Positions 5,805 through 49,849 are shown, counted from the stretch's first letter. The stretch is DNA of 64,000 nt from Geosiphon pyriformis uo1 (GCA_016748015.1 JAAOMT010000495.1:202094-266093), one strand, 5' to 3'. Translations and numbers: made by a program. Notes: generated from the letters alone by a model not told the origin.

Positions 5805-5849
5805 TTTAAAGTTGTTTTTGCTGTGTTGTTTCCATGGGAGAGCACCAAA

Positions 5850-9800: not shown

Positions 9801-11420
9801 TCAATGACATTTCCAGTTGTGTTATAGATGAGAATTTTAATGTTTTTGGGGCTTTTGGCTGATATGTAAAAATTAGTAAGTCTAATCTTTCCTGATTCAC
9901 AGATGGTGGCTTCTGCTTCAAACAACTGAGCTTGATTCTTTACTTCTCTTTTTATGGTTATTATATACTGATAATATAGTGGAATGGAAATTGATTGATG
10001 AGTGGAGATAATTTCTTTCTTGTCAACAATTTTTTTCTCTGCCATATTAACTGGTACATCTATTCTACCTGTGGATTCAAAACCCTATATCTCTCTAGCT
10101 GTGATTCCTAATTCTTTCCTGTTTTCTACTGATACTAACTGAGCTATTTTCACCAGAGGTAGGAATATTGCTTGTGTTATCTTTTTATTTGGATCTATAA
10201 TATATGTCTTTTTCGAATTATTTTGTAGCATAGCAATGATATTTCCTATGTATCTCGCATTAATTATTTCTTCTCTAATGTTGATTCCCTTTTTTGCTAA
10301 ACTACTTCTAGATACTAGTTGAACCATAATTGTTGCTGGGATTTCTAATGCTATTTTGAGATCAATGCAGGTATGTAAATGGGGTTTTAATTTAATAGGA
10401 TTTTTTTCCAAATATCTCAGATCAAACTCTGTATTGGTATTATGTACACGTTCTGGCATGATACCTTTATTATTATCACTGAACCATTTAAGTTCCTGTT
10501 CTTTGGTGAGATTAGAGAGTGTAATGTAGGTTTCAGAGTTTGAATTTGAGTCTGAATTGTTGTTATTTTTATTGCTATATTAAGCAAAACTGGAACCATT
10601 GTTTTTGTCATTATTATTATCAGAGTTTGAATCGGGATTGAAAATCAATTCCAATTCTAATATGTAGCTGCTGATTGGTTTTTCCTCTTCTGGAATTGTG
10701 TAGATCATGCATGGTGGTAGATTGTAAATGAGATTACACTCATTACAATATTGGAAGTCACAGAGAATTAAGCAATGTTGACATAATTGAGTATTCAACT
10801 GTTCTAAGCATTGCTTCTGCTCTTCTTTAGTGGGTGCTAAGTTTTGATAATGTTTATGGAATTCTTCTGGACCTGTTTCAATATCCAAGAATGCTTCTGG
10901 ATTGGAGATCAAAACAATGTTGACTGGTTCTGATGGGTTGTTCTTAATCTCTAAGATTTTGCTGGATGTGACTCTTTTGACTTTGGCATTAGTCATACAT
11001 CAGATCTCATTCTTGTTGTGTGGATACTCATTCAAGTGATTGATTGTTCAGTGCCAGACTGCAGTAATAGGCATTCTAAAATTTACCCAGTCACTAATGA
11101 GGATTGTGTATTGGCACGAAGCATTGCACATTCTTTTTTATCCAGAAATGTTATTCCACATTCCTTTATTGAGCAACTGTTCGCCGCAAGCAAGACATGG
11201 TTTATTGTCCCACTTTTCTTGACATTTTGGGTACTTGTATCATTCTCTATGGCATGGCTTACAGTAATAATGTGTGCATGTCCAGTAGTCTTTGTTTGGC
11301 ACTATTTAAGCTTCTATAAAAGAGAGTTTTTTTCCATAGTCTTTGTATTTAAGAGGTATGTATGGTGGTTGTGGCAGTGGCTTGTAAATGAGTATGAATT
11401 TGTCCAGCCACTGTTTATTT
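6831..11420 (-). mobile_element. Copy B2, 3' half (Cys-rich, dUTPase, RT, RNase H, integrase); decayed
   Basis: dUTPase SRSSLAKKGINI (10085-10459); RT/RH pieces; stop MRQI-TAA at 8236-8234; integrase from ATG 8203 to 6831; collinear with 43460-48087. Confidence 0.9.
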
Positions 11421-12343
11421 GGTTGGCTTCAGACTTAGCAGATTCAAAATCTTTGGCATAGGTAACTGTGTTTTGAAGGATGCTTGGATGTAATAGACAT
11501 ACATATTGCAAGATGCTGCTATGCAGACCATGGATAAACTGGTTAAGAATCTGTGGCACTGTAAAATAGTTGGCATCAATTGCTTGGATTTGGCACAGAT
11601 TTCTATGAAAGCATCCCAAGTAAGTGGTGACTGCTTCTGTTTCTCCTTGCTTTATGGTGCTGAATATATTGGCTAACCAGTTGATACTGTTATTGTTGCT
11701 GAAGTATCTTAAAAATTTCACTTTAAAGGCATTGAAGTCTTGTGGTTTATTAATCAAACTCTGATACCACGAATTGGTAGTATCTTTAAGAAAGTAGGGA
11801 ATGGCTTGCATTGCTTGAGCATTATTCCATCCATTGGCTGCAATGGCTTTTTCCATATCATTCAGCTATACTTGGACATTGTCTTCTTCGCTGGTAAAAT
11901 TGTCAAGTTTTGCGATTAGTGTGTAGGCCATTAGATCTAAGTTGGGTTGTTGTGGTGGTTGTTGAAGTGATTGTTGTTGCATGGGTTGTTGGAGTAGTAG
12001 TTGAAGTGATGGTGGTATAAGTTCAGCTATTGGATTAATCAGTGGTTGATTGATGACGATTACCAGAGGTAAGTTTGGTTGATTAATTAGATTGGGGTTT
12101 TGATTATCTTGAGTTGGCAGTGTCTGAATATTCAAAGTGTTGATTTCCGGATTTTCTGGATTTAGATTTTGCTGGGTTTGAAGATTCAGGGTTTCCAATT
12201 TTGGGTTTTCTAGGATTGGGTTTTGGTAAGTGAATTCTTAATTCTCAGATTCTTTTTCTTCTTTCTTTTCATGTTCTCCTTCCAATTCAGTAATTTCCCA
12301 CAGACTTGCTGTTCCGAAATCTGGTTGAGGTGGCAGTGATTGG
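11420..12343 (-). mobile_element. Copy B3 gag capsid segment, distal to the A2 insertion
   Basis: MAYTLIAKLDNF...ANGWNNAQAMQAIPYFL...ESAKSEAN; rejoins 22090+ in frame once A2 and one 4-bp TSD copy are removed. Confidence 0.88.
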
Positions 12344-13215
12344 TATTACCAGTAGAATTTTAGTTATTAATTAACATGAAATTACCCATATAATTCCTAT
12401 AATTTATTATTATATTAATATCATTTCAAATTATCATTTATTATTTAATCAATTATCACATATCACGATTCAATTAAAATAATCTAATTAGTATAACAAA
12501 AAATAGGATGATCAAATTACACAATACCCTGAACTTTGTAACATTCAAAAATTCGCCAAAATTTACAGAAATTTGCCGAAATTATGAATAGTTCACCCAA
12601 ATTAATCAATAGTTCAGCGAAATAACTTGTAGTTCATTAAAATGTATCTTTAGTTTGCCGAAATTTGAGCAAAGAGAAAAAGTGCAAGTTCATAGACTAG
12701 TACTACAACAAGTTGTATAAAAGAAAAGCTTTTCTCTTCTGAAAAATGTATCTTACTTTAGATTTATCTCTTAAAACCATTCCTATACACACAAAAAGAA
12801 ATAAATATTAAATAATTCGAAANNNNNNNNNNNNNNNNNNNNTCCCTTGACAGAATTCTATTTCTTTTACATTTTTTTTATTTTTCTTTTATTTTCTTAT
12901 TACAATCATTAGGGTAGCCTACAGATGAGATTCCTGTAGAAGAGTTGACTTTCACAACAAAGTAACTACATATTTTTAGTGAGCTTCCAGATGAGCAATT
13001 CCTGGGAAAGAGTTGACGTTTACTACAACGTAACTACATAAAGTAACTGGCAAAGAATTGGCCATTCCACTTATAAGCCCAGCAGTTCAAATTATAAGAG
13101 ATAATTTGAAGATAAATTCAGTTATTGGAGGTTCAACCACATCCAGAAAACGTGAATTTACAACAAACAGGCATCAACAACATTTAAAAAAAGAGACCAA
13201 AAACCTCTGGTAACA
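12344..13215 (+). repeat. A2 5' LTR (contains an assembly gap)
   Basis: TATTACCAG (TG mutated to TA)...GGTAACA; matches 21116-22089. Confidence 0.93.
12823..12842. other. Assembly gap (20 N)
   Basis: Run of N; comparison with the 3' LTR suggests about 120 bp are missing. Confidence 0.98.
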
Positions 13216-13233
13216 TTTGGTGCTCTCCTATGG
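13216..13233 (+). promoter_or_regulatory. Primer binding site of A2 (tRNA identity not determined)
   Basis: TTTGGTGCTCTCC directly after LTR ...CA; the same TGGTGCTC core follows all five 5' LTRs. Confidence 0.85.
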
Positions 13234-13260
13234 AAATAACATAGCAACAACAAATTCAAA

Positions 13261-16200
13261 GTGGTGACCACACCAGACACAGCAACTCTAGAGTATAATC
13301 AGTCAATTTACACCCACTGCAAGCAAAGATTCAATATTCCAAACGGAATTGAAGTTGTAAAGAAATCAGTATACCAATACATTGAAAACTGCATTAACAA
13401 TTATCTTTTTGGAAACTACAACATTTCAGAAGTTAGAAGCAACCTCTACAATAATTTAGTACACTATTCACAATTGGGAACAAAAGACCTGAACAGTGAA
13501 ACACTTGCTATCTACTTCCAAGAACTTAATTTTAACATTATTGAGTATTGTGAAGAAAAATACCCAGTACAGTCTAAATACACTTTTAACTTTGAATCAG
13601 AGACAGAAACAAGCAACAAAGGCAAACAAAGATTGAAGCAATACTCAAGAACCACTCCAAACACTCCAACACTACAAAAGACAACTGCCAAACACTTGCA
13701 AACACCTGAACAAGAAACCAGTGTCAAATTACCACTTTCTATTACATCATTTCCAATTTCACTTGTTCAACCACAAACACCAAGTTTACCACTTAGCCAT
13801 TTCTCCAGACCAGAAGATTTTCAGTCACCTAGAAATCCTACTCAACAGCAGGAACCAATATCAACAAGTGCCAATATCATTGATTACTTACAGGAAAACA
13901 AAAGTAATCACTCAGAAAGCTTGGAAAGTGAAGAAACTGAATCAAAACCAGAAGAAATTACAGAAAATGAAGAAAAAATGGCAACTGCTTACATTGCAAA
14001 AATCCCAGAATTTACTGGTGAAGACAATAATACCAGTTCTCAAAAATGGCTTGACAAGGTTCAAAAAGCAGGAGATGCAAATGGTTGGATTGCAGCAAAA
14101 ATGCTCAAAGCAATTCTCTACTTTCTTCAAGAAACAACAGGAGAATGGTTTAAAAATTTAGAAGAACCATTTAAAAACTGGCAAGCATTGAAAGATGCTT
14201 TTCTATAACAATTTACCGACAACAATACCTCTATTACTCTTAAAAACTGCTTTCACAATATCAAACAAGAAACATCTGAATCTGTTATGATCTATCTTGG
14301 AAGATTTAACAAACTTCTCAGACGAATCCGACAATTGGAAACCAATGACTACTATTTTGATGCTCAAATTTTGGATCAATTTATAACAGGGTTAAAAGAC
14401 AAACTGATTAAAAAAGTCCATTCACATGCTCCAGCAGACTTAGCAACTGCTATTAGACATGCAAAAAGCTATGAGATGGCAATGGAAGAAGCAAATCACC
14501 AAGCTTGTAAATTTTGCAATTGGAGAAACCAGCTCAGCAGCTGAAGAAAAAATAGACCAACTCACAAGGAAAGTTGAAAGCTATTTTACAAACCAACAAC
14601 AACAGCAGCAACAACCACAAAGATATCAACCACCACAATGACACAACCAAAACAATTTTGGATTACCATTCAACAACCAATCTCAAAATTGTCATTATTG
14701 TGGAATTCCAAAACACTGGAAACAAGATTGTAGGAAATTACAAAGAGACCAACAAAACAGGAGTAATCAACATTACTCTTCACCACAACAATCCTATTAC
14801 CAATCTCCACCACCAACCTATTATTCACCAAGACCACAAAATCAAAACTACTATCTACCAGCTCCACAATCAATACAGCAACAATATCAGCAACCTTTAC
14901 CAATTCAGCCATATCAGACACCACCCACTCAACAATATCAAGTACCAGCAAGAAGATTGGTTTAACATAACCAATTCATACTCCAAAATCAATTGCAGAA
15001 TAACCACAACAGAATCAATCTAAATAACCAGTTGGTTCCCCAAAATTCAGGTCAGCAAAGACCCAATCACTATCACATTCAACCCAGTTATCTTACAATA
15101 CCAGAGGAATCAGATTTTCAACAAACTGCACTTTCTGAAAATGAAGTTGCAGCACTAAGATCAAACCCTTCCAACCACACCATTCCACCAGCTTAAATTG
15201 CCCAAAATGCTAATCTGTCAGATATATTTCCATTTGAATTTGAAGCAAATGAATCACCATTTCTGCTTAGTAATGCAGCAGTCAATGAACAGAAAGCAAT
15301 TACTGCTATGTACACAGAAGCTACAGTGGAAGGAAAACCCATTCGCTTAATTTTAGATAGTGGATTAGCTGGAAGTATTATCACTTACCAGCTGATGCAA
15401 CAACTCAAATGAAATGTAGACAGACCAGCTCAAACAGTTATTGTCACAGCTGATAGTATGAAGAAGACTTCAGTAGAAGAAATTGATAATTTCCCTTTTT
15501 CAATTGATGGAATCACCATTCCAGTTAAAGTTCTTGTTATGGATGCACCCTAATATCAAGTTCTAGTCGGAAATGATTGGCTTCTCAAGGCCAATGCAAA
15601 TCTGAACTGGAAAATTCAAGAACTTAAAATCTCATACCAAAGACAATATACCATAGTACCTGCAACCTGTGGTACCTTTAATAAATGATCAGAAAAAGCT
15701 TCAGTATTTGAATTTGAAGAGGAGAAAGAAATGCCACTTACTGAAACCTACATGGCTCTTGGATCAACATTCAATTGGGCTGAAGAAACCGAACAAGAGA
15801 TTTTTGAAGAATCAAGGGAATGGAAGAAAGTTAGATATTCTACACCAGAACCACGGAAACAACCACCCTATATTCTACTTAAATGCAAAGATTGCAACAA
15901 AAAACTTTCATCAATGGAAGCATGTATTTCTCCAGAAGAGGAATATGAAACTCGTACCTGTTACTTTTGCAAAGCATGCCATAAAGAACGATTTGGATCT
16001 CCAAAAAGAAGTGGAAAATGGGACAACACACCTTGCCTTATATGTGGAAAAATGCTACCAAAAGAATGCAATTGGATTGATGTAGCAATGAGAGGAGGAG
16101 TATGTGATCAAACCTGTTAATATGCTCTATCAATTTCGGAAAAAGTCAGAAGAGGAACACCATTTGATGCAGCATACAACAGTGTTCTCAATAAACTTTA

Positions 16201-18880
16201 CCACTACATTCATGATGCTGAAATGATTTTTGACTTAGCAATGGCATTGATCAATGGAACCACCCAAGAAGATGTTTGCCAAATGAAAAAAGCTGAATAT
16301 ATTGAGTATACCATGGAATTAGCTGGATTTGATTATGAAGATGAAGTAGAAACCTACCATCAAATTGCAAGCCACACATATCCAACCAAAGAAGCTCAAA
16401 TTCAATGATTAGAGCAAATAAACATTCAATTGTGTAAAGAATGTGTTATGCCTTGTGATGACCAATGGTGTTTAAAATGTTATGCTCTTAGCATTTCTCT
16501 GCCAGATGAGAATGATGAAAATAAAATCGAATTTGGAGTATCTGAACTAGTAGAAGAACTACCAACCACTTCCATCTATCTTCTTGAAAAGCAACCATCT
16601 CTACAACTTAAATATTTTGACAACCATGGCCAAGGAATCAGACCAGAAAAAGCACACGAAATTAATACTAGATATGATCTAAGATACCCAGGAAAAGATA
16701 CTTTGATTCTCCAACCAAAGTCTTTGACAAAAATTAATCTCAAAATTGCTTTTGAAATTCCACCAGGAGCAATGGTTCAAATTGCCTCCAGATCATCATT
16801 GGCAAGCAAAGAAATCAATATTAAAGAAGGAGTTATAGATGCAGGATACACTGGAGACATTACCATCATGTTACAGAATGAGACAGACAAACCATTCAAA
16901 ATTAAACATGCTGAAAAAATTGCTCAAGTAATTTACTTACCCTTAATCAACATTTCGGGTTTACAATCAATAAACAACAGAGAACAATTGGGAAAAAGTG
17001 AAAGAGGAACTCAAGGTTTTGGTTTAACTGGACAATTTACAGTTCCAGTAAACATAGTTTTTAATACACAAAATGAATCTCACCAGATTCTTCAACTTCC
17101 TCAGCCAATTACCATTTCATCTTTTGGAGAACATCACAAAATTTACACTTGCTCAAAACCCACTACTACACAACAAATCTTTGAATCCAATGAACAAATC
17201 TGTTTGAAGCATGAAATATCAATTCCAAACGTTTATATTCCCAAAGGAATGAAAAAATTTTGAGTTATATTCTACAACCCCAATAATTATCCTATTGTTT
17301 TATTAAACAAATTAGAAATTGGAATCATACACAGCAATATTTTTCAAGATGAAAACCCTCAAATTGTCTTTAATTTCATTGAAATTGTAAAGCACACTTT
17401 ACTTCCAAATCCAAATATCATTTCTATTATTGAAAACTACCACTTGTTGGAAGAAAAACTCTCTCAAATCAATATGGGTCTCTTAGAACCTCAACAACAA
17501 AGACAATTGAAACAATTGATAGCTGAATTTGCAGATATATTTGCAAAAGACAACAATAACTTGGGAAAAACAGACATTGTTCAACATCAGATCCATACAG
17601 GAGATGCTCTACCAAAACATCAACAAGTTTATCGAGTGCCACCTGTCAGCCACCAATTCATCAGAGAAGAGGTCCAAAGAATGCTCAATAACGGATTGAT
17701 TCAACCATCAAGAAGTCCTGGGGCCTCATCAGTAGTTTTAATTAAAAAGAAAAACGGAAAAATCAGATTCTGTGTTGATTATAGACAACTGAATAGTGTT
17801 ACAATTGAAGATGCCTATCCTCTTCCAAGAATTGATGACATGCTAGATGCTCTAGGAAAAGCCAAGTTCTTTTCAACTTTAGACCTAAAAAGTGGATACT
17901 GGCAAGTCGAAATGGACCCAAAAGATAGACCCAAAACAGCATTCACCACTCAAGGAGGAAATTATGAATTTAATGTTATGCCTTTTAGACTCTGTAATGC
18001 ACCAGCAACATTTCAGCAACTCATGGATGTTGTCTATGAAAAGCTCTTGTGGCAATTAGTAGTTGTTTATCTTGATGATACTAATGTATACTCACCAAGC
18101 TTTGAAGCCCATCTCATTCACCTGTGAGAAGTTTTTCAACGATTATGGAAAGCAGGATTAAAGTTAAATATTGAGAAATGTCACTTTAGAAAAACAAGCT
18201 TGATCTTTCTTGGACACATAGTTAGTAAAGATGGAATCAAACCAAATCCAGAAACAATCAGTGCTGTCAAAAACTTTCAAACTCTCAGAAATACTACAGA
18301 ACTAAGAAAATTTGTGGGATTAGCCTCTTACTATCAAAAATTCATAAAAAGATTCTCAGAAATTGCCAAACCACTCAATTATCTTACCAACAAAAACATA
18401 CCATACAAATGGATTAAAGAACAACAAAAAGCTTTTGAAATCTTCAAAACAAAATTGACAACAGCCCCAGTTTTTGCTTATCCAGACTTTAACAAACGAT
18501 TTCAATTAGCCACTGATGTCTCACACATAGTATTTGGTGTTATCTTATCACAATTGGATGAAAATGGCCAAGAACAAGTTATTGCCTATGCCAACAGAAC
18601 ACTCAAGCCAACAGAACTCAAATATGGCTCAACTGAATTAGAAGCTGCTGCAGTTATTTGGGCTCTTAAACATTTTCAACAATATCTGAAGAATGGAAAA
18701 GAATTTGACATAATAACAGACAACATTGGCCTCAAATGGCTTAATAAAAAGAAAACTGAACAAAGTGCCAAACAGTCTCAATAGAATAACTTCCTAGCAG
18801 ACTACAGATATATTATACACCACAAACCAGGAAAACTACATACCAATGTTGATAGCCTCTCAAGAATGAGACAAGATTAA
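13261..18880 (+). pseudogene. A2 ORF1: Gag-PR-Cys-rich-dUTPase-RT-RNaseH
   Basis: GTG at 13261, ATG at 13978; CHYCGIPKHWKQDC; LILDSG; dUTPase ~16640-17035; VVYLDD; RNase H LATDVS...ELEAAAV...ITDN; ends MRQD-TAA; one frameshift near 14497 and several stops. Confidence 0.9.
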
Positions 18881-18937
18881 TACCAACAACAATTCCACCA
18901 CAACTTACCAACTTACCAAAAAAATAACCAAACAAAA

Positions 18938-20285
18938 ATAGATCCCAGAAACTACAGCAATCTTAAAAATTATTTGGAGACTCTTACTATGCCAGAAAAC
19001 TGGTCTTTAAGTGAAAAACACCACTTATAATACCAATCAAAACAATATTTCATATACCAAAACAAAATCTATTATAAAAATTACAGAAAACCAAACCAGC
19101 CACTTAGATTAGTACAAGAGAATGAAAAAGAAACAATTTTATACAACATGCATACAGATCCGTCTTCAGCACACTTGGAAAAAGAGAGAACAATTCAAAG
19201 AACCCTTGAACATTATTTTTGGCCTCACATGCAAAAAAACATTTGATAATATGTAGAATCTTGTGATAATTGTCAAAAAAGAGAAGGAACTCGCCCCACA
19301 GAACCTTTAAATCCAATCAAAGTTGGACAACTTTTTGACAAAGTTGGAATTGATTTAGTCGGACCATTACTTATCACAACCCAAGGAAATTGTTATATTG
19401 CAGTTGCAGTGGATTATCTTACCAAATGGCCTGAAGCTAGAGCCATCCAAAGAGCAGATGCAAAATCAGTAGCAAATTTCATCTATGAAGACATTATCTG
19501 TAAACATGGATGCCCAATTGAACTCTTATCTGATCAAGGAACACATTTTGTGAACAACTTGATACAAAAAATTTGTGAACAGTTCAATGTTAAAAGACTT
19601 TTATTATCATCTTATTATCCTCAAACAAATGAACTTGTAGAATGTTTCAACAGAACATTGTGTGAATCTTTAGCCAAAGTCTCAACAGACTTTGAGCAGG
19701 AATGAGATATCTTTATTCCATCAGTGTTACTAGCATACAGAACACTAAAACAAGATACTATGAAACACATATCATTTGATCTTACTTATGGAAGGACAGC
19801 AATATTACCAATTAATTTTACAGTGGAAACATACCCAGTGCAACCAATCAATGAAAAAAACTTTCAAAAAACACTCCAAAGAAAAGCATACACTCTTCTT
19901 AGTACACTGGAAGGAAAAAGAAGAATAGCAGCAACTCATATTGAACATTCCCAAGCTTAACAAAAAGAAAGACATGGAAAATAAAGTTCTCTTACACAGA
20001 ACTAAGGCTGAAAAACAATGGAGTGGGAAATTTGAAAACAAATGGGATGGACCATTTTATATTCATGAAATTCTAGGCAATGGATCATATAAGTTAAGAC
20101 TTGATGACAAAATATTAGCAAAAGTTGCACATGGAGACAGATTAAAACACTATTATTCCAGAAACAATCCTGAACCATTAATTTCACAAATTGGTACACA
20201 TTCCCTTTTAATTAATCCTGAAGATATTTCCCGAAATTTAGAACCAATAATTATAATAGAACAACAACCAAACTTGAACACTTAA
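18938..20285 (+). pseudogene. A2 integrase (separate ORF2)
   Basis: MHTDPSSAH...SCDNC (HHCC); GIDLVG, SDQG, VECFNRTL (DDE); WDGPFYI GPY/F module; no chromodomain; start ATG mutated to ATA. Confidence 0.9.
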
Positions 20286-20427
20286 ATTTTACAATAATTC
20301 TCTAATAAAAACACAAAGACAAAAATAGTAAATAATTACAAAACACCCAAACCCAAAAACAAATAAAAACCCCATATCCAAAAATCATTTTCTTTATTTT
20401 CTCTTTTTATAATTAGTCAATTTTATC

Positions 20428-21135
20428 ATAATTATTTCCCGAAATATTCAACAAATATCCCAAAAATTAATGTTAGCCTTGAAAACACTCTCTGACTTAT
20501 CTATAACGATTAATAGAAGTCAAATTAATTACATTCAGAAAGAAACCACAGCCCCAGTAGCAAATTATTTACAGAACTATCATCCCTATAGAAGAAAAAC
20601 AAGAAGTCACTCTGAGAATAGATTACCAAGACTTGTGAAGCAGGCACTAGAAGAAAATTTTTTAATTGCCCCTATTAACATTCTACCAAATGCTACAATA
20701 CAACAAAAACTTCTACTACTTCTTAATGAACAGAACAATGAACACACTCCTATCTATAAATACTTTCAAATTGGAAAAACACTTTATGAACGAAAACTGG
20801 AACTTAAAGCAACAAATCTCACTCCTGAAGTTATACAAAAACAAATCCACAATGAATTCAAAACAGCAGCTGGACCAACAAACACTTACTACAAACTTAG
20901 AGCAGCTCTTAGACTCTATGACTTGTTTAATACTTGTGAAAATGTTCTACAAAATCTAATACTGCAACCAATAAAAGTCTAATACATTAGCAAACTCACA
21001 GAACTGAAATTTCAACAATTTTCAGACCAGATTACTTCAATTATTTTAGATCACTATCTCAATATTACAGATAGTGCCTGGACTTCGACAGAGCTCAGTT
21101 TTGAGGAAGAAATTATGTTACCAGTAGAATTTTAG
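20428..21135 (+). pseudogene. A2 ORF3, unknown ~235-aa protein ending inside the 3' LTR
   Basis: Collinear with the open ORF at 39020-39739; one internal TAA at 20980-20982. Confidence 0.8.
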
Positions 21136-27900: not shown

Positions 27901-30087
27901 TCAAAAACTTTTTAGTACCAACAAATCTTACAGAATTAAAAACATTCTTAAAATTTGCTAAATTATAAAACTTTAGTATTAGAATATTTAGCTATCTATT
28001 GAACTATTATTAAATAAAAAAAATATTTAAGTCAAAAATTTATGATGTATACTAATTACAAAAGATTAACATCAATTCAAAAGCAAAAATTTGAAGCTAA
28101 TTGCTATGCAAAATAAAAAATAAAACAATTACTATTTAATTATATTATATATTATAAAAAAAAAAATGCTGAAAACTTGTTATAAATAAAACAAATTTAA
28201 ATATTTTAATCCAAAAATATAACAAAAAATAAATACACAAAAATATTAACAACTCTAATATTAGATTAATACTTAACAATTAAAAAAAATATATCTTAAA
28301 AAAAACAAAACAACATAAAACAACAATTAAAATACTTTATTATTTATCAAGATATACTATATTAAAAAAACAAAAAATATCCAAATCAACCAGTCAAAAT
28401 AATCACAAAACCAGAAAAAAAAACAATACTGTTCAATATGTATTTAAATTCAATAACAAAACATTTTTATAAAGAAGCAATTATAAAAAAAACTAGAAAA
28501 AAATACTATTAACTATTTATGTATTTAGATATTATTTAATATATTTAAAATTGTAATGCTTATCAAAAAAAAAAGGAATAAAATCCAATAAACCACTAAA
28601 ACCAATTAAAATAAGACAACCATTTGATCAAATTAGAATTGATTTAATTAGACTATTAATAATAACCAACAGAGACAATCAATATATAGTAGTAGCCATA
28701 GATTATTTCACAAAATAGCCAGAAGCAAAAGCAATTTAAAGAGCAGATACAAAATTTATAGAATTCATTTACCAAAATTTGATTTGCCAACATAAATATT
28801 CAAAAAAATTGTTATCAAATTAAGAAACTCATTTTGTAAACAGAATATTGCCAAAATTAAGTTAAAAATTTAGAATTAAGAGACTATTATTATCATTATA
28901 TTATTTATAAACAAATGGCTTAATTGAAAAATTTAACAAAATATTGTGTAAAGTAATAGCTAAGATTAGTCAAAAAAACCAGAATAAATAAAATTTGTTT
29001 ATATTATCAGTATTATTTGTTTATTAAACAATAAAGCAAAATACTACACAAGTAATATTATTTAAACTTGTCTATAATAAAATAGCAACATTATTAATTG
29101 AGATAAATATCAATACATATTTAATTGAACCAATAACAGAAGCCAACTTTTAAAGAACATTACTAAAAAAACATATGACTTAATAGAAATATTAAAAAAC
29201 AAAAGGTAAAAAGCAGTTAATAATATCTAAAAGTTACAAGCAAAACAAAAAAAACAACATAATAACCAATTATCAAATAAACCACTCAAATTCAGAATTA
29301 AAGACAAAATACTCTTATATTATATTAAAGCAAAAAAACAATAGAATAGAAAATTTGATCCCAAATAAGATAAATCATTTTATATTAAAGAAATTCTAGA
29401 AAATGAAGCTTATAAATTAAGATGAAACAATAAAATTTTAGCTAAAACAGTATATAAAAATCAACTAAAATTATATTACAATATAGTATTATTATCTATT
29501 AGTAATATTCTATAACTAAAGGTGCAATAAATACTAATCTAATCAAATAAGATTTCACAAAATCTAGAACCAATTATTATTATTAACACAAATACATTAA
29601 ATTAATCTACAAAAACAATATATAAAGAACCAACATATATAATAAAAGCAAATGGAAAAATAGAAATTATTAACAATATTTACTTATTAATCCAACAAAT
29701 ATTTTAATTAATTAAATATTAAAAACTAAACATAGAAATTACAATTAATTAACAAATTATTCAATATAAAGACACAGAAAAAAAACAGAAACTCCAATAT
29801 AAAATATAATATAAAGTACATAAAAGACATAAAAATATAGTAAAAGATATAATAGCAAAAGTAAAAATATCTATAGAAACACCAAAAACAATAGTATTAT
29901 ATAAAGAATTAATAAAAAAAATTAAAAATAGTAAACACAACAATTTCCAAAAAACTTTTGCTATTATTACTTAAGACAAAAAATCTATATCTAAAACTTA
30001 TATATAAACAAAACAAAATAGATATTTAATACAACAATATTACAATAACTTAAACAATTTATGAGAAAAAACAATTTATTTACACAG
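24940..30087 (+). mobile_element. Copy B1, heavily AT-eroded gypsy relic (Cys-rich, partial dUTPase, RT, partial RH, IN, ORF3 start)
   Basis: From ~25750 collinear with B3 (43680-48555), almost entirely via G>A and C>T changes; deletions near 26418 and 27967; homology of 24940-25750 is uncertain. Confidence 0.8.
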
Positions 30088-33000
30088 TATTATTCATAAA
30101 ATATAGAAAGTATATTAGCATATAAATTAGCCAATCAAAAGTAAGCACAATAGATATGGAATTCCAGGATTCCTCTTAGAGGAATTGCAGGATTCCAGGA
30201 ATTTCAGAATTCTTATACAAAAAATTGCAGAATTTCAGAATTTCAGAATTTCAGGATTCCTCTCAAAAAGAATTACAGAATTCCAAGAATTCCAGGATTC
30301 CTGGTGTAAGAAATCAAGGAATTAAAAAATCTCAATTATGTATATATAGTGGTAGTATTAAAAATAGAAAAGACAGACTTCTCAGTTTAGATTTGATCTA
30401 AGCAATCTTCTATATCACAAATATTAATAAATAATTATTCACTATTTCAATCCACTTTTCACTATTAACACTTCATGTTAATAGTAAGTCATACTTAATC
30501 ACACTGAAACTAAAGCTCTTGATCATGACTATTGATGGAATACTAACTTGCAAAATTGTCTTGATTTTCTTTGTTTCTTTATTTTTTTTGTTATTTTTTT
30601 TGTTGTTTACTAAAATTGATTAAGGATTAAACACTGAATTATTGACATTAAGGATTGCTTGGTAAAAGACCTCTGCAAGTAGGTATAGCACGTAAAAGAA
30701 TTACAGATTACTTACCAGAGGATTGCCAGCCACCAAGCCAAGAAAAAAATTGATGGAATTGTAATTCCAGGAGGCTATTAAAAACAACTATTGAATCTCT
30801 GTTCATTATATAAAGGACTCAACCAAAATTTTTAGATCTATAACCACCTTCAGAAATCAACATTATTAATCAATTGAGCACCAAGTTATGGATTTGTTAT
30901 TTGCTTTGAGACCCCAAATAATCATCTGTAACATTTGGTGCTCTCTGTAAGGTATAATTCTACAGAGATCCAGCACCAACAACAATTATCCAAAAGTGGC
31001 AGAATCAGAAATTATAGAAACCAACCATCTAAGATTTGCCAAATTTCTGTTTTAACAGTACAGCTAACAGCTAGGATTAAACAATAACTATTTTCCAGCA
31101 GAATCAGTCTTCAACTTTTACGTCAATAATAAAATTACAAACTGCTTAGGAGAAACAGTTAACATTAAATCTACAAGAAAAAATTTCTATACAGAGTTAT
31201 TTCAACATACCAGTTTACCAAAAAACTACAGTTTTACACCAATCATTAGAGAAATCAATCAAATAATTAAAAGGTACATCCACAACAATTTCCCATCACC
31301 TATGCAGACAAAGGCAAAAGAAGATTGCAAACACCAGCAGTAACACCCAAAAAGATATAATCACCCATTTGGAAGAAAACCAGAGTTGAATTATTCACTA
31401 ATTCATCATACCATTATACACCAGGAAGTACTATTAATATCTCCTCAACAGATGTGTTTCTATCAAATGTGACATTAACTTTTAGACAATTCTTATTTCA
31501 AAGTAAACAAAAAAGAACAGAACTATTAAGACCATATGGTAAATACTTTGAAGAATTTAAATTGTGATTACCAACACCATCAGGATTTTGATCACCATTA
31601 CATTAACCAAATTTTAAAACTGCAAGTTCATGGGAAGTGACAGAATCAGAAGAAGAGAAAGAAAAAGAAAGTGAAGATCAGAAATTTACTTACCAAAACC
31701 TGATCCTGAAAAATCCAGAAGTTAAAACTCCAAATATTCAAATCCAGCAAACTCAAAACAATACCAACTCTGAAATAATTAATCAGCAAAACTTATCTTC
31801 AGTAATTGTCATCAATCAGCCACCAATTGAACCAATCATTGAATCAATTCAACAACAGCCACTTTAGCAACTTATTCAACAACTGCTTTAACTACTTTAA
31901 CAATCTCAACAGCTGTTTCAACAACCACAACAACAACAACAAATGGCATACGCACTAATTGCAAAGCTAGAAAATTTTTTTGGTAAAGAAAACAACATTC
32001 AAATGTGGATTAATGACATCACCAAAGCCATTACTGCCAATAACTGGAATGATGCCAGAGCCCTCCAAGCAATTCCCTATTTTCTTTAGAATATCACTAA
32101 CTCATGGTATCATAGCCTAGCTCAGAAACCTCAAACATTTGATGCATTTAAATTAGAATTTTTAAGATATTTTAATAATAGCAACAGTATTAATTGCTTG
32201 GCCAACATCTTCACTACCATTAAACAAAGAGATACTGAAACAGTCACCACTTATTTAAAACATTTCTATTGAAATCTGCATCAAATACAAGCCATGAACA
32301 CTGATTGCTTCACCACAGCCCAGATTCTGAATCAATTTATTTGTGGATTATGCAGTAGCATTCTCCAACACATATGTTCAATGCATCTAGTAGATCTTTA
32401 AACCACAGTTACACACACCAGAGATTTTGAATCAGCTGAATTAGAAGTTAACCACACCCAAGCCATAAATCTAGTAATAAATAGATCATCTGACTAGAAT
32501 TCCAAACTAAAGCAATTCAGTAATTCAATCAATCAGAAAATTAAGGGATACTTAGCTGACAATCATGCAATTTATCAACCACCACAATAATGCAATAATT
32601 CAGAAAACCTGAATCATTTTTAAAATTAGTCATGTCTATTATTATTATCTAATCAGCAGTAGCAGTTAGATACATGAATCTGCCACAACTGTAATAAACA
32701 AGATCACATTAGAGCTAACTGTTATTTTTATAGTAATTCACAATCAGGAAATTAATACCAAAACCCTGATCATAGAATTCAAACTCTGAATTATTACTTA
32801 AATTAAGACCAATATTAAACCACTTACCTATCAATGATGCAACAGCTACTATATTAACCATCTGTATATTAACCTCCAGTTTATTAACTGCAGTCACAAG
32901 TAATCTATTAACCACTGCAGTCACAAACAATTTATCAAACACCTGTAGTTCAACCACTGCCATCAAACCCAGTTCAAGTGACATCAGGAAACCTTAGATC

Positions 33001-34015
33001 AAGAGTCACTCAAAATTGGAGATTGGTGATGGTTGTTTACCAACTGATCCTCAGCTCTTCCACACAACAATTAGGATTACAGTCTCAGAATTCAGGAACC
33101 AAGTATGCACAAAACCCAAATTTCCAACACTATTTAAGTCTTCTGATTACCTCAGAAGACACTCAACCTAATAATCCAGCATCCAATTAACAACCAATAC
33201 TTACCAGCAATATTCCACCAGCTACCATTACCAAAAACAAATCATTGGACACCATCTTTTTATTTGAACTCAAGAAACTGTCAACCACACTGTTGTTTAA
33301 TGGAGCCATTCTGGAAGAAAAACCTATCACCACCATGTACACTGATGCCAAAGTCGATGGCTACTTCATTAAACTGATCCTAGACAGTAAATCAACTGGC
33401 AGCATCATCACAAAACAACTTATGGACCAATTAGGTCACCGAGTTGATCAAGCTGTCAGTGCATAAATCATCACTGCTGATGGAGCAACCAAAACTCCTA
33501 TTGGTAAAATTAATGACTTCTCTTTTGAAGTCAATGACATCATCACTTCTATCAAAGTCCTAGTGATGGAAGCAACTCAATATTAGACATTAGTGGGAAA
33601 CAACTGGTTATCTAAAACCAGCGCCATACTCAACTGGATAACACAGGAGCTCCAACTTAGCCAAAACAGCCAACACACACAAGTACCAGCCACATATGGT
33701 CACTTTAAAACCAACAACTTACCAATACCACTTATTGATTTCGAGGAAGAAAAAAAGAAACCAACTTGGGAAGCATATTAAATCTCATGGGCTGATAATG
33801 ACCATAATAAACTGCCACCCATATTTTCTTGAGATGACAACAGAAAAGGAAAACAACAAGAAAAACGTACCTGAAATACTGACCAAACATGGGGAACTGA
33901 CAATAACCAGGATGAACTGTTAACTTGGAAATGGGAGGAAGATAATAAGAGAAAGGAAAAAGAAAAAGAAAAAAAAACATATCCGAAGAAGCCACAAACA
34001 CCAAAGAAATAAACA
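30088..34015 (+). mobile_element. Copy B2, 5' half: LTR 30088-30933, PBS, gag, protease; inserted in ORF3 of B1
   Basis: TATTATTCATA...TGTAACA TTTGGTGCTCTCTGT; GTG at 30996, ATG at 31943; knuckle ~32680; KLILDSKSTGS. Confidence 0.9.
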
Positions 34016-37000
34016 AAAAGCAATCATGGCTATGTATACTGAAACAGAAGTCAAAGGAAAGGCAATTCACTTGATCCTAAACAGTGGATCTGCCGGAAGC
34101 ATTATTATCTACCAGTTAATGCAACAGTTAAAGAGAAATGTCAACCGACCAGCTCAAACAGTAATTGTTACTGCTGATGACATGAAAAAGACTCCAATAG
34201 GAGAAATTGACAATTTTCTGTTCACTCTTAATGGAATTACTATTCCAGTCAAAGTTCTTGTAATGAATGCGCCCCAGTATCAAGCCCTTGTCAAAAATGA
34301 TTGGCTCCAAAAAGCCAATGTAAAATTAGACTGAAAAACCTAAGAATTACAACTCTTCTATTAAGGACAACATACCCGAGTACTCACTACTTGTGGTACA
34401 TTCAACAAATGCTCTGAAAAAGCCCCAGCTATTGAATTCGAACCAGAAAAAGAAAAACCAATAATCAAAATGTTTATGGCTCTTGGATCAATGTCCAATT
34501 GGGCTGACAAAACTGAACAAGAACACTTTACACCACACTCTAAACCCGAAACTCCTGGATGGAATATCCCTTACTCAAAGCCTAAACCAAGGAAACAATG
34601 CTCCTACATTCTCCTTAAATGTAAGGACTGCCACAAAAAACTATCGTCAATGGGAGCCTGCATTTCACCTAAAAAAAAATATGAAAATCATACTTGTTAC
34701 TACTGCAAGGCTTGCCACAGAGAATAATGGGGCCATCTAATAAAAAGAAGTAGAAAATGGAACAACACTTCTTGTTTGACTTGTGGAGATATGCTACCAG
34801 AAAAATGCAATTAGATTAATGTAGCAATAAGAGGAGGAGTCGGTGATCAAATCTGCCAATATGCTTTATCAATTTCAGAAAAGTCAAAGGAGGGACACCC
34901 TTTGATGCAGCATACAACAATACTCTCAACAAACTGTACCATTACCCTCATGATGCCGAAATGATTTTTGACCTAGCAATGGCTTTAATCAATAGAGCCA
35001 CTCAAGAAAATGTTTGTCAAATGAAAGAATCAGAATACATTGCATACACCTTTGAAATTGTTGGATACAACTATGAAAATGAAGTAGAAGTATATCACCA
35101 AATTGCCAGTTACACTTATCTGATCAAAGAAGCTCAAGCTCAATGGCTAGAGCAAATAAATGTTAAATTGTGTGAAGAATGCATAATGCCCTGCGATGAG
35201 CAATAGTGCCCTGAATGCTATGCTTTTAGCATTCTCCTGCCCAGTAAAAACAATGAAAACAAAATTGAATTTGGAGAACCTGAAGCAACAGAAGAAATTG
35301 AAACAACACCCATCTATCTTATCAAAAGTCAGCCTGCCTTACAACTCAAATACTTTAACAACAATGAACAAGGAATAAAACTTGAAAAAGCACATGAAAT
35401 TGATGCTGAATATGATCTAAGATATCCAGACAAGAATACTCTTGTTCTCAAACCCAAATCTCTCACAAAAATCAACCTCAAAATTGCACTCGAAATCCCA
35501 CCAGGAGTAATGATTCAAATTGTCTCCCGGTTCTTTTTGGCAAGCAAAGAAATCAATGTCAGAGGAGGAATAATTGATGCTGGATATACTGGAGACATTA
35601 CAGTAATGCTTCAAAATGAAATTGACAAATCATTCAAGATTGACCATGTTGAAAAAATTGTCCAAGCTATTTATCTACCCCTAATCAACATTTTAGGTTT
35701 GCAACTAGTCAATCAAAGAGAACAATTAGGAAAAAGCGATAGAGAAACCCAAGGTTTTGGTTCAACTGGATGATTCACAGTTCCAGTTAATATAGCTCTT
35801 AAAACACAGAATAAATCCCACCAGGTTCTCTGACTTCCACAACCAATTACCATTTCACTCTTTGAAGAACATCTGAAAATTTACATCTGCCCAAAGCCAA
35901 CAACCACATAACAAATTTTTGAGTCCAATAAACAAGTCTGCTTGAAACATAATATTTTGATCCTAAACATTTATATTCCAGAAGAAACAAAAAAAGTCTG
36001 AGTTACTTTTTACAATTCCAACAATTACCCCATAGTTCTATTAAATAACTTAGAAATTGAAGTCATTTACAGTAATATCTTTCAACAAGAACTACCCCAG
36101 ACAGTCCCCAATTTTTTGGAAATCATTGGACATTCACTACCAAAAATCAACCCAAACCCTAGCTCTGAAAACTACCATGTTGTCATAGAAAAACTATCTT
36201 GAATCAACATGAGACAACTTAAATCACAACAATGGAGCCAGCTCAAAGAGCTAATTGTAGAATTTGCCAATATTTTTGCTGAAAACAACAATGACTTAGG
36301 AAGAACCAATTTGGTTCAACACCAAATTTATACAGGAGATGCCAAACCAAAAAGACAACAAGCATATCGAGTTGCTCCAAAAAGCCACCAATTCATCTGA
36401 GAAAAAATACAATGAATGCTTAACAACGGGCTCATCCAACCCTCCATGAGTCCTTGGACTTCACCTGTAGTGTTAGTTAAAAAGAAAAATGGGAAGATAC
36501 AATTTTGTGTTAATTATTGACAATTCAATAGTGTTACAATTGGAGATGCCTACCCTTTTCTCTGAATTGATAACATGTTAGATGTCCTTGAAAAATCCAA
36601 ATACTTTTCAACACTAGATTTAAAAAGTGGTTACTGGCAAGTTGTTATAGATCCCAAAGATCGCCCCAAAACAGCATTTACCATCCAAGGCAGAAATTAT
36701 GAGTTCAATGTAATGCCTTTTAAATTATACAATGCACTAGTAACATTTCAGAGATTAATAGATGTTGTGTACCAAGGATTTCTTTGGAAGTCAGTAGTCA
36801 TTTATCTTGACGATACTGATGTTTATTCTCCATTGTTTGAATTACACTTAAAACACCTGTAAGAAGTTTTCAATAATTACAAAAAGCAGGACTAAAACTC
36901 AACATCGAAAAATGCTACTTTGGAAAAACAAGCTTGGCCTTCTTTGGTTATATTGTTAGTAAAAATGGAATCAAACTGGACTCTGAAAAAATCAGCATTG

Positions 37001-37751
37001 TCAAAAACTTCAAAACTCCTCAAAACACTACAGAACTAAAAGGATTTATAGGGTTAGCCTTCTACTATCAGAAGTTTATCAAAGGATTCTCAGAAATTGC
37101 AAAACCTCTCAAACAGCTTACCACCAAAAACATCAAATATGAATGGACTGCTGAATGCCAAAATGCATTTGAAATTCTCAAAGAAAAACTAACAACAGCT
37201 CCAATTCTCGCCTACCCAAATTTCAGCAACCAATTCTAATTAGCAACAGATGCCTCTTATACTGCCTTTGGTGCTATTCTATCACAACTGGATGACAATA
37301 GAAATGAGTAAGTAATTACCTATGCTAGCAGAACATTAAAACCAGCTGAGAAAAATTATCTTGCCACTGAATTAGAAACAGCAGCTGTAATTTGGGCCCT
37401 ACATCATTTCAATCTTTATCTTCAGCCAAAGGAATTTGATATTATCACTGATAATATTGGACTCAAATGGCTTCAGAACAAAAATACTCAGCTAAATACA
37501 AAACAAACCCGATAGACAGAATTTCTAGCAAACTATTTATACATAGTACATCATAAACCAGGAAAACTCCATACCAATGTTGACTGTCTCTCCAGAATGA
37601 GACAAGATTAGAAAAAAAAAACCAACACCCAACTTAACCAACCAAAACAGCCAACAAACAATGAATTCAGAAAACTACAACAATTTTAAACAATATTTGG
37701 AAACATTAACAATCCCAACAGATTGGTCTCCAGATGAAAAATATTGACTGC
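34008..37751 (+). mobile_element. Displaced internal segment of copy A3 (PR to start of integrase)
   Basis: A1/A3-subfamily sequence with no LTR; ends where the A3 integrase resumes at 41131. Confidence 0.85.
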
Positions 37752-38069
37752 CCAAGCTGTTAATTTAATAATAAATGGATCATCTGAATTGGATTCTAAA
37801 TTGGAGAAATTCAGTGAAACAATTCATCAGAAGATAGAGGGATACTTAGCTAACAACAATTAGGCAATTTATCAAACACCACAATGATGCAATAATCAAA
37901 GAAACTCTAATTGCTTCCAGAATTAACCACATCCATCTTTATTGACCAATCAACAGTGGCAACAAGAAATGCATATTTGCCACTATTGTGGTAAACAAGA
38001 ACATATCCAAATTAACTGCTGCCAGTGTTTAAATAACTACTAATTAGGAAATCAATATCAAAACTCCAA
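37749..38069 (+). mobile_element. Copy B3 gag middle segment with zinc knuckle
   Basis: AQAVNL..NGSSELDSK...CHYCGKQEHIQINC; continues in frame at 42221 once A3 is removed. Confidence 0.85.
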
Positions 38070-39019
38070 TGTTACCGGAGGTTTTTGGTCTCTTTTCTTG
38101 AATATTGTAAATGTCTGTTGGTTGCAAATTCACGTTTTTTTAGAAGTAGTTAAACCTCCAATAACTGAATTTATCTTCAATTTATCTTCTATAATTTGAA
38201 CTGCTGGGCTTATAATTGGAATGGCTAATTCCTTACCAGTTACTTTATATAGTTACGTTGTAGTAAATGTCAACTCTTTCCCAAAAATTGCTCATCTGGA
38301 AGCTCACTAAAAATATGTAGTTACTTTGCTGTAAAAGTCAACTCTTCTACAGGAATCTTGTCTGTAGGCTACCCTAATGATTGTAATAAAAAAAGAAAAG
38401 AAAAATAAAAGAAATATAAAAGAAATAGAATTCTGTCAAGGGAAACGTTTTCTATCCAGGTCTGGAGTCACTAACAGTTTATTGAAATTGGTAGCTAATC
38501 AATTTCAAAATGTTAGTTGGGTTTTGGGGATTTTCCAAGTACAATAATTAAAGAATTTGGTTTTTTGAATTATTTGATATTTATTTCTTTTTGTGTATAT
38601 AGAAAATGGTTCTAAGTAATAAATCTAAGGTAAGATATATTTTCTCGAAAAGAGAAGCTCTTTTTTTATACAACTTGTCATAACACTATTCTATAAACTT
38701 GAACTTTGCTATTTTCTATAATTTCGCTGAACTAAAGATACATTTTGGTGAACTACAAGTTATTTCTGTGAACTATTAGATATTTTGGCAAACTATTAAT
38801 TATTTTGGCAAATTTTTTACAAATTTTAGCAAACTTTTTGAATGTTACATAGTTCAGGGTATTGCATGATTGATCATCACAATTAGGTTACATTTGTGTT
38901 ATGTACAAATTGGATTATTAATTAAATAATAATTTCGGATATTTTGCTAATGTAATAAGTAATAATTTGAACGATAATATATGCTAATTAATAATAAGAT
39001 TTATAAGGGTAATTTCATG

Positions 39020-39739
39020 TTAAACAATATCTTTAATTTCGTCTGGTAACATAACTTTCTCCTCAAGACTGAGCTCCATCGAAATCCAAGTACTGTCTGT
39101 AATTTCCAGATAATAATCCAAAATTATTGAAGAAATTTGGTCTGAAAATTGTTGAAATTTCAGTTCTGTGAGCTTCCCAATGTATTGAATCTTCAAAGAT
39201 TGTAAAATTGGGTTTTGTAGGACGTTTTCACAAGTGTGGAATAGGTCATAAAGTCTAAGAGCAGCTCTTAGTTTATAACGACTGTTTGTAGGCCCAGCTG
39301 TTGTCTTGAATTCATTGTGGAGTTGTTTCCAAATAGCTTCTTTTGTGAAATTTGCTGCTGTAAGCTCTAGTTTTCGCTCATGAAGTGTTTTTCCAATATA
39401 AAAATATCTATATATTGGAGGGTATTTGCCATTTTCTTCATTAAGACACAGTTGAAGTTTTTGTTGAATAGTAGCATTTGGTGGAATACTAATAGGAGTG
39501 AGCAATAAGTTTTCTCTTAAAGCAAGCTTCAAAAGTTCTGGTAAATGAATTCCAGAATAACTTCTTGTGTTTTTTCTATAAGGGTAATACTTTTGTGAAT
39601 TTGGGACTAAATTTGTAACTATTTCTGTTTGGGTATAATTAATATGTTTTCCAGTGATAGTAATGGATAATTCAGGTATTGTTTTTAAAGCTAACATTAA
39701 TTTTTGAGATAACTGTTGAATATTTTGAGGGATAGTCAT
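39020..39739 (-). CDS. A3 ORF3, open ~239-aa protein of unknown function in the env position
   Basis: Uninterrupted frame from ATG 39739 through the PPT into the LTR; homologues in A2, B3 and B1; no obvious hydrophobic transmembrane segment. Confidence 0.75.
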   Translation of the reverse strand: MTIPQNIQQLSQKLMLALKTIPELSITITGKHINYTQTEIVTNLVPNSQKYYPYRKNTRSYSGIHLPELLKLALRENLLLTPISIPPNATIQQKLQLCLNEENGKYPPIYRYFYIGKTLHERKLELTAANFTKEAIWKQLHNEFKTTAGPTNSRYKLRAALRLYDLFHTCENVLQNPILQSLKIQYIGKLTELKFQQFSDQISSIILDYYLEITDSTWISMELSLEEKVMLPDEIKDIV

Positions 39740-39860
39740 TATAAGCAATTTGAAATAAAAGAAAATTATTTTTGGTGCATGGGTTTTTATGTTATTTTTG
39801 TTTTGTTTTTGTGAGATTGTTTCTAAATTATAAAAAGATAACTATAATAATAAATTTAAA

Positions 39861-41131
39861 TTAAGTGTTCAAGTTGGGAGGTTGTTCAATGACAACTATT
39901 GGTTCTAAATTTCAGGGAATGTGTACCAATTTGTGAAATTAATGATTCAGGATTGTTTCTGGAATTATAGTGTTTCAAACAATCTCTATGTGCAACTTTT
40001 GCTAGGATTTTGTTATCAAGTCTTAGTTTGTATGATCTGTTGCCTAAAACTTCATAAATAAAGAATGGTCTATCCTATTTATTCTCGAATTTTCTACTCT
40101 ATTGTTTTTCAGCTTTACTTCTGTGTAAGAAAACTTTGTTTCCAATTTTAAATTCATTGGTGACTGGAGGCAATTTGTTATCATGCCATTCTTTTTGTTG
40201 AGCTTAAGAGTGTTCAATATGGGTGGCTGCTATTCGTTGTTTTTCTTCCAATGTGCTAAGCAGAGTGTAGGCTCTTCGCTGAAGCATTTCCTGGAAATTG
40301 TTTTCATCGATTGGTTGTGCTGGGTATGTTTCCACTGTGAAACTAATTGGTAATGTTGCTGTCCTTCTGTAAGTTAAATCAAATGGTGTGTGTTTTGTGG
40401 TATCTTGTTTTAGTGTTCTATATGCTAGTAACACTGATGGGATAAAGATATCCCATTCTTGCTCAAAATTGGTTGAGACTTTGGCTAATGATTCACACAG
40501 TGTCCTATTAAAACATTCTACAAACCCATTTGTTTGTGGATGGTAGGGCGAAGATAATGGTTTCTTGACATTAAATCATTCACAAATTTCCTGGATTAAA
40601 TTGTTTACAAAATGTGTTTCTTGATTAGATAAAAGTTCTATTGAGCATCCATGTTTACAAATAATGTCTTCGTAGATAAAGTTTGCTACTGATTTCGCAT
40701 CTGTTTGTTGAATGGCTCTGGTTTTGGGCCATTTGATGAAATAGTCTACAGCTACTGCAATATAATGGTTTCCTTGGTTTGTGATAGATAGTGGTCCGAC
40801 TAAATTGATACCAACTCAGTTGAAAAGTTGTCCAACTTTAATTGGATTTAATGGTTCAGTAGGGCATGTTCCTCCTTTTCTTTGACAACTATCACAAGAT
40901 TCGACATATTCGTGAATGTCTTTTCTCATTCAAGGCCAAAAGTAGTACTCTAGTGTTCTTTGGGTGGTGTTGTCTTTTCCAAAGTGTGCTGATGAAGGAT
41001 CTGAGTGCATGTTGTATAATATAGTTTCTTTTTTCTGTTCTTGTATTAATCTGAGTGGCTTGTCTGAGTTTTTGAAATTTTGATGATAAATAATGTTGTT
41101 GTGTAGAAAATATTGTTTGGCTTGTTGTTGC
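39861..41131 (-). pseudogene. A3 integrase lacking its N-terminus
   Basis: MHSDPSSAHF, SCDSC, DDE core and GPF module; several stops. Confidence 0.88.
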
Positions 41132-48779: not shown

Positions 48780-48792
48780 AAGGAGAGAATAA

Positions 48793-49815: not shown

Positions 49816-49849
49816 AAGTGCAGTCCAACCACTACTTAAGTACATAAAA

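Follow-up and report, generated by a model that had tools for sequence, protein, structure and literature searches.

Complex rearrangements of the genome are said to include chromothripsis, chromoplexy and the balanced complex rearrangements of the germline. Chromothripsis is reportedly recognised by the clustering of breaks, by many breaks with random order and orientation of the pieces, by an alternation of retained and lost segments without copy gains, and by its restriction to a single haplotype. In Drosophila, inversions are reported to arise from staggered breaks, with short inverted duplications at both ends. In plants, illegitimate recombination and double-strand break repair with filler DNA are said to act in nested clusters of long terminal repeat (LTR) retrotransposons. 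Here, we describe a nest of LTR retrotransposons and one long interspersed nuclear element (LINE) in Geosiphon pyriformis, in which four junctions fuse non-homologous pieces and the sister LTRs of broken elements lie on opposite strands. This structure probably goes back to a single event with five double-strand breaks, which was repaired by end joining.

The window that we analysed is a stretch of 64,000 nt of the scaffold JAAOMT010000495.1 (GCA_016748015.1), and positions are counted within it unless another copy is named. The assembly has 129 Mb in 795 scaffolds with 64% repeats, and a k-mer and metagenome-style binning approach lies behind it (PMC9453076). The nest holds two families of Ty3/gypsy elements, family A, with gag, protease, dUTPase, reverse transcriptase (RT), RNase H and integrase, and family B. 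The reference copies were L001 (intact B), L005 and L006 (intact A) and L002 and L003 (other LINE copies), while L004, the DNA around the gene G9A89_008648, is identical to window 1-12612 and carries on to the left of window position 1. Continuity was tested by coordinates against these natural intact copies from elsewhere in the genome, and no reordered or mended element was built. The pairing of LTRs was tested by tree support and by transversion-only distance.

Pairing of the separated halves

The two LTRs of the element B3 (22749-23571 on the minus strand and 48784-49621 on the plus strand) are sisters with a tree support of 100/99. The LTRs of B2 (30088-30933 on the plus strand and L004 16202-17052 on the minus strand of the window) are likewise sisters, with a support of 100/100. 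The transversion distance is 0.002 per site within each of the two pairs and about 0.10 to the other B LTRs. The preliminary description of this locus had asked for diagnostic substitutions that might assign the rejoined halves to different subfamilies, and these distances place them in the same element. True LTR pairs, including that of L001 (8168-8996 and 17364-18192), have 0.06-0.11 transitions per site, whereas their transversions amount to 0.000-0.002 per site. This divergence of the aligned LTRs, almost entirely by transitions, points to a putative strong cytosine-deamination process, or one like repeat-induced point mutation (RIP), which would have acted on the repeats after their insertion.

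The target-site duplications (TSDs) give the same pairing. Two of them had been described as now facing in opposite directions, and both were found at the termini of the LTRs or at the edges of the LINE homology. The CTGT of B3 (reverse complement at 23572-75, and 49622-25) adjoins the LTR termini TGTTAC...GTAACA. The 9-mer AAGTGCAGT of the LINE (reverse complement at 24510-18, and 49816-24) stands exactly at the edges of the LINE homology as set by L002 and L003. This 9-mer is not rare, with 4 occurrences in the window vs 0.48 expected, and its weight lies in its placement at both homology edges. For B2, the TSD ACAG is common to both ends of the element, and its host B4 resumes beyond it at L004 17057, with an exact spacing of 64 bp.

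The two LINE pieces are 26 kb apart and inverted to each other in the window, but they align to adjacent stretches of the reference copies (L003 8077-8996 and 9010-9197; L002 8484-9401 and 9419-9600). When a single CTGT is counted, the window and L003 have an identical spacing of 25 nt across the B3 site. These other LINE copies reach further 5', whereas the LINE of the window is truncated exactly at 24509, beside its 9-bp TSD. The LINE open reading frame (ORF) was said to read in frame across the two pieces. The frame is indeed kept across the B3 site when compared with the C-terminus of P0122, but a TAG lies just upstream and the frame is shifted earlier.

The displaced middle of the element A3 (S3) and the A3 remnant share no stretch that could be compared directly, and their profiles to third copies were used. 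The transversion distances to L006, L005 and A2 are 0.013, 0.025 and 0.094 for S3 and 0.012, 0.016 and 0.081 for the remnant, and the two profiles agree. Every segment is present exactly once in the window, and duplication is limited to 4-9 bp.

Junctions and fit of the breaks

The motifs quoted earlier for the four junctions were present, and all four junctions (J1 to J4) join non-homologous sequence, with J4 placed here at 41125-28. Read on the minus strand, J1 fuses B3 gag, ending in ...GAAGCCAACCA, to B2 AAATAAACAGTGG..., with 1 shared base at 11420. It mimics an internal deletion of 1.5 kb. When the ORF that spans J1 was compared with database proteins by word search, none of the 157 Geosiphon gag matches crossed J1, and an exact look-up gave 0. 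At J2, the last base of B2 is 34015, at the end of ...GAAATAAACA, and family A homology runs from 34008 on. Four other A copies read AATGAACA at this site and the window has the B2 version, AATAAACA, so that the microhomology is 4 bp when perfect (AACA) and up to 8 bp at most. At J3, the A fragment ends in ...TTGACT at 37749 and B3 picks up at (TG)CCCAAGCT, with 0-1 bp shared. At J4, the A3 leader/gag start ends in ...GCAAGCAA at 41128 and the integrase side begins with CAACAAGCC, with CAA (3 bp) shared.

An ordinary nested insertion, in which the host resumes in the same orientation beyond a TSD and complete LTR ends, was found for A1, A2, A3, B2, B3 and the LINE. At J1-J4, on the other hand, there are no LTR ends or TSDs, and the hosts resume on the other strand. 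Microhomology of zero to a few bp and the loss of 0-4 bp at the balanced breaks are in keeping with end-joining repair, either non-homologous end joining (NHEJ) or alternative end joining (alt-EJ).

Three breaks had been called nearly balanced, and the coordinates in the intact copies bear this out. The halves of B3 meet at L001 10512, where the minus half ends, and 10515, where the plus half starts, which is a fit of 0-2 bp. The ends of the A3 break that separates the RNase H domain from the integrase zinc-binding domain are 7 bp apart in A1, L005 (12772 and 12780) and L006 (12392 and 12400), and the net loss is 1-4 bp once the CAA shared at J4 is allowed for. The halves of B2 overlap by AAATAAACA, and 4-9 bp of B2 are found at both J1 and J2 (9 bp when measured against the B3 sequence); therefore, the B2 break would have been staggered. 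The probability that unrelated fragments abut within 10 bp by chance in elements of about 10 kb is roughly 0.002 per break, and the three fits cannot plausibly be a coincidence. A loss of about 2 kb was also part of the preliminary description, and it corresponds to about 1.94 kb of A3, from 110 bp past the LTR (gag) to just before the protease domain.

Proposed history and its alternatives

The ancestral segments were named a (up to 11420), b (reverse complement of 11420-34015), c (37750-41127), d (S3; reverse complement of 34016-37749), x (lost) and e (from 41128). The order proposed earlier, S1, -S2, S4, -S3, (~2 kb lost), S5, restores every broken element (B2, B4, B3, A3 and the LINE). In our terms, an ancestral order a b c d x e would have become the present order a -b -d c e. 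In the ancestral nest, a 5'-truncated LINE would have come first, followed by B3 into the LINE and then by A2 and A3 into B3. Beside these elements, B2 would have lain inside B4 and A1 inside B2. The event would have taken place after the insertion of A3, whose LTRs are 93.4% identical vs 86% and 84% for the pairs of B2 and B3. Five double-strand breaks would then have occurred within about 32 kb, one in B2, one in B3 gag and three in A3. Of the last three, one would have fallen right behind the leader/gag start, one directly ahead of the protease domain and one in the stretch from RNase H to integrase. The pieces may then have been religated in a different order, by non-homologous or microhomology-mediated end joining. 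The 22.6-kb piece bounded by the breaks in B2 and B3 would have been inverted, and the 3.7-kb A3 middle would have been inverted and placed at the inversion junction. A 3.4-kb piece, which carries the stub of B3 together with the 3' portion of A3, would have kept its orientation next to new neighbours, and the 1.94-kb A3 gag piece would have been lost.

In a genome with 64% repeats, the junctions might be an artefact of assembly, scaffolding or library preparation, that is, chimeric molecules or misjoins. The only N in the window are the 20 N at 12823-12842, inside the non-coding 5' LTR of A2, where they interrupt no reading frame. The left flank of this gap (12346-12822) is 95.8% identical to the A2 3' LTR (21118-21594) and only about 77% to other A LTRs, and the right flank (12843-13216) is 93.9% identical to 21717-22090 and collinear with the left one. 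About 122 bp are unread at the gap vs 20 N written. Because these flanks match, the A2 LTRs are sisters (100/100), the TSD is TTGG/TCGG and the host B3 is collinear on both sides, the sequence is soundly joined at this point. Another gap, of 1105 N (L004 12613-13717), lies immediately to the left of window position 1, in the A1 integrase region. Thus, window 1-12822 is a 12.8-kb contig between two scaffold gaps, and J1 lies in this contig. It fits an artefact as well that the assembly was made by metagenome-style binning (PMC9453076). However, none of the junctions coincides with a gap, and the longest stretch common to two partners is 9 bp, which is too short a repeat to mislead an assembler. 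J2-J4, both discordant B3 LTRs and both LINE halves are all contained in one gap-free contig, 12843-64000. J1 belongs to the other contig and is exactly reciprocal to J2 and J3, which random chimeras would not be. In addition, A1 and A2 run on collinearly at the two ends of contig 1-12822. We consider an artefact quite unlikely.

The rearrangement may also have come about in other ways. The order a, -b, -d, c, e can be reached from a, b, c, d, e by three inversions, and two or three separate rearrangements that reuse breakpoints would suit a nest of transposable elements (TEs). They could be these inversions, for instance, or a transposition that inverted the A3 middle and preceded the 22.6-kb inversion. 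Rearrangements build up in such nests with time, and identity within the LTR pairs here is 84-95%. Each path, however, re-breaks an earlier junction within 0-4 bp, and the ends of the B3 and A3 breaks still fit to 0-2 and 1-4 bp, respectively. Serial events are improbable for this reason, and parsimony argues for one event. Replicative template switching, by microhomology-mediated break-induced replication (MMBIR) or fork stalling and template switching (FoSTeS), would have a nascent strand copy a, -b, -d, c and e with four microhomology-primed switches, as in chromoanasynthesis. The microhomology at J2 (4-8 bp) and J4 (3 bp) and the 4-9 bp of B2 at two junctions are in its favour, but microhomology is the only one of its marks seen here, as the window has no duplications, triplications or copy gains. 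Each segment occurs once and the switch points coincide pairwise within a few bp, which is predicted by breakage and not by copying. Copying has therefore little probability, and breakage with ligation is favoured, since nothing beyond 4-9 bp was duplicated. It was also considered that independent truncated, nested and deleted copies need no rearrangement at all, or that homologous recombination took place between inverted B2 and B3. Taken alone, J1 resembles a minus-strand B element that has lost 1.5 kb internally, and J2 and J3 resemble a plus-strand B element with an inserted A fragment. Independent copies do not account for the opposite-strand sister LTRs (0.002), the matching TSDs, or the LINE and B4 that are contiguous across the breaks. 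The B2 break corresponds to position 43464 of B3 and the B3 break is at 37750, and J1 amounts to a deletion, and J2/J3 to a duplication, of the same interval of about 1.5 kb of the element. Homologous exchange is excluded because, in element coordinates, about 1.5 kb separates the break in B2 from that in B3, identity between the copies is only about 70-78% at the breaks and the joins share few bp (0-4, at most 8), which also upholds the earlier statement that LTR-LTR recombination was not involved. Both of these explanations are very improbable.

For the single event repaired by end joining, several points weigh on the other side. The evidence comes from a single NCBI assembly of the species (the only one in the protein collection) and stands at the level of the assembly, not of the reads. 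Sized scaffold gaps stand close by in family-A repeats, with 1105 N at the left edge of the window and 20 N at 12823. One event is argued from parsimony alone, and four joins are too few for a statistical test of random order or orientation. Moreover, the missing 1.94 kb might be present at another place in the genome.

Layout and surroundings of the nest

Table 1. Features of the retroelement nest from left to right in the window
Feature	Position	Strand	Remarks
A1	5' LTR 5848-6830	minus	Nested in B2 3' half; bounds the B2 piece on the left
B2 3' half (pol)	6844-11420	minus	Continues left of the window to 3' LTR, L004 16202-17052; 78% identity to B3 48074-43464 and to L001 16647-12576
J1	11419-11420		B2 3' half and end of B3 5' half, both on the minus strand
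Gag part of the B3 5' half	11420-12343	minus	Ends at the equivalent of L001 10512
A2, Ty3/gypsy with dUTPase	12344-22089	plus	Nested in B3; TSD TTGG/TCGG; 5' LTR holds the gap 12823-12842
B3 5' end including 5' LTR (about 22749-23571)	22094-23571	minus	LTR 84.4% identical to 48784-49621
B3 TSD CTGT (23572-75), LINE 5' piece (23576-24509), LINE TSD AAGTGCAGT (24510-18)	23572-24518	minus	
AT-rich sequence, 1.2 kb	24519-25748		Between LINE 5' piece and B4
B4 body, heavily C-to-T mutated	25749-30087	plus	Host of B2; ACAG at 30084-87 is the B2 TSD
B2 5' half with 5' LTR (30088-30933)	30088-34015	plus	LTR 86.3% identical to L004 16204-17052
J2	34008-34015		B2 end overlaps start of A3 fragment (AATAAACA)
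S3, A3 middle (protease, dUTPase, RT, RNase H)	34016-37749	plus	Moved and inverted vs rest of A3; 87% identity to A1, 84-89% to L005 and L006
J3	37749-37751		A3 fragment end and start of B3 3' half
B3 3' half, first 0.3 kb	37750-38069	plus	Corresponds to L001 10515-10831; up to A3 TSD CCAA (38066-69)
A3 3' LTR (38070-39051) and integrase side (39052-41124/7)	38070-41127	minus	
J4	41125-41128		A3 integrase side and A3 leader/gag start
A3 5' LTR (41237-42220) and 110 bp of leader/gag start	41128-42220	minus	TSD CCGA 42221-24
B3 3' half, remainder, with 3' LTR (48784-49621)	42221-49621	plus	
B3 TSD CTGT (49622-25), LINE 3' piece with (TAA)n tail (49626-49815), LINE TSD AAGTGCAGT (49816-24)	49622-49824	plus	

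The TSDs of the A-family elements are each one base apart by a transition, namely ACAT/ACGT for A1 (6831-34 and L004 15486-89), TTGG/TCGG for A2 (12340-43 and 22090-93) and CCAA/CCGA for A3 (38066-69 and 42221-24), whereas the older B-family TSDs are identical at both ends. Family A is very abundant, with 323 Geosiphon proteins that match at E <= 1e-20, and an ORF of A1 is 100% identical to G9A89_008648. Its dUTPase sits between protease and RT (window 1797-2642 and 16430-17263; L005, L006).

B4 (25749-30086) has a GC content of 19%, and its comparison with an intact copy gave 680 G:C-to-A:T transitions and 141 in the reverse direction. The rate per available site is about 0.41-0.45 for CpA, CpT and CpC and about 0.58 for CpG, with no strong dinucleotide preference. 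Judged from these contexts, the mutation pattern is unlike classical CpA-biased RIP. In L004 (18071-20075), the B4 3' LTR directly abuts the inverted 5' part of a B element of the same hypermutated subfamily, and B4 is read as nested in a sibling element. The own 5' part of B4 was not found. A tandem of B4 and B2 that share one LTR was rejected, as B2 has its own 3' LTR and TSD to the left of the window and B4 resumes after them. An extra inversion was considered as well, as the B4 3' LTR clusters with the inverted LTR at L004 19254-20074. It was rejected at a transversion distance of 0.037 vs 0.002 for true pairs, and the position of the junction exactly at the LTR end also speaks against it.

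The ancestral flanks of the LINE are extremely AT-rich, with 8% GC at 50001-52000 and many short degenerate tandem repeats of period 10-102 (49825-52000 and 24519-25748). A purine/pyrimidine-coded alignment of 24519-25748 and 49825-52500 as decayed B4 or family B did not score above shuffled sequence.

To the right of the nest lies a CLASP-like host gene (53275-58511) with an ORF of 1325 aa, CLASP_N and HEAT domains and a long glutamate/arginine/glutamine-rich tail; an ORF upstream of it is without a family match. A urease gene with gamma, beta and alpha domains follows at 62128-63451. These two are the nearest genes, more than 3 kb to the right, and both are untouched by the rearrangement. 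A biological effect is probably absent, as no host gene was touched.

Comparison with known rearrangements

If reads confirm the junctions, the locus would be a cleanly resolved and nearly balanced multi-break rearrangement in the arbuscular mycorrhizal fungal lineage. All fragments and lost bases can be accounted for because the broken pieces are retroelements of known intact form. It would also mean that at least some of the TE-rich regions of this group are reshaped by end joining rather than by recombination between repeats. As transitions make up nearly all of the differences within the LTR pairs here, a distance based on transversions alone finds the true sisters even on opposite strands, so that a genome-wide survey of such events is possible. 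It is conceivable, although rather unlikely, that a nucleus of this Glomeromycotina fungus underwent a single local shattering, in which five or more double-strand breaks within 32 kb were repaired by end joining, and that the result is maybe still polymorphic among the co-existing nuclei of the fungus. If this is true, such events would be a source of structural differences between nuclei, and TE nests would hold a base-resolved record of them. No report linking chromothripsis to mycorrhizal fungi was found in the literature searched.

Ancestral B2 and B3 were inverted repeats that flank the inverted segment, as in inversions by ectopic recombination. Unlike in those, the breakpoints are at non-homologous positions, and the joins share 1 bp or 4-8 bp. 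As in the staggered-break inversions of Drosophila, ectopic recombination is not involved, and 4-9 bp of B2 are inverted at both ends of the segment. The duplication is, however, very short and found at one of the two inversion breakpoints, and a third fragment sits at the other junction. The filler-DNA repair of plants resembles our case in its setting in a TE nest, in the microhomology joins and in the capture of a nearby TE fragment. In plants the filler is copied and the donor stays intact, whereas the donor A3 lacks exactly the captured piece, and therefore the fragment would have been cut and pasted.

The clustered breaks, the new order and orientation, the blunt or microhomology joins, the small losses, the absence of copy gain and a derivative that can be walked end to end are shared with chromothripsis and chromoplexy. 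In the ancestral sequence, the five breaks fall in about 32 kb, and a stretch of 9 kb takes in four of these. A single 1.94-kb segment was lost, and the others are present once, with 4-9 bp duplicated. In contrast, the breaks are few. There are four joins, with two fragments inverted and one kept in its orientation, a number too small for a test of randomness. Chromothripsis involves tens to hundreds of breaks over megabases, while here five breaks and four joins lie in 32 kb, in the silent TE DNA of a coenocytic fungus. The term chromothripsis-like, which was used in the preliminary description, is overstated for five breaks in 32 kb of silent DNA. The event in Geosiphon is too small for chromothripsis proper, and it is a well-resolved complex end-joining rearrangement, which is a known kind of event.

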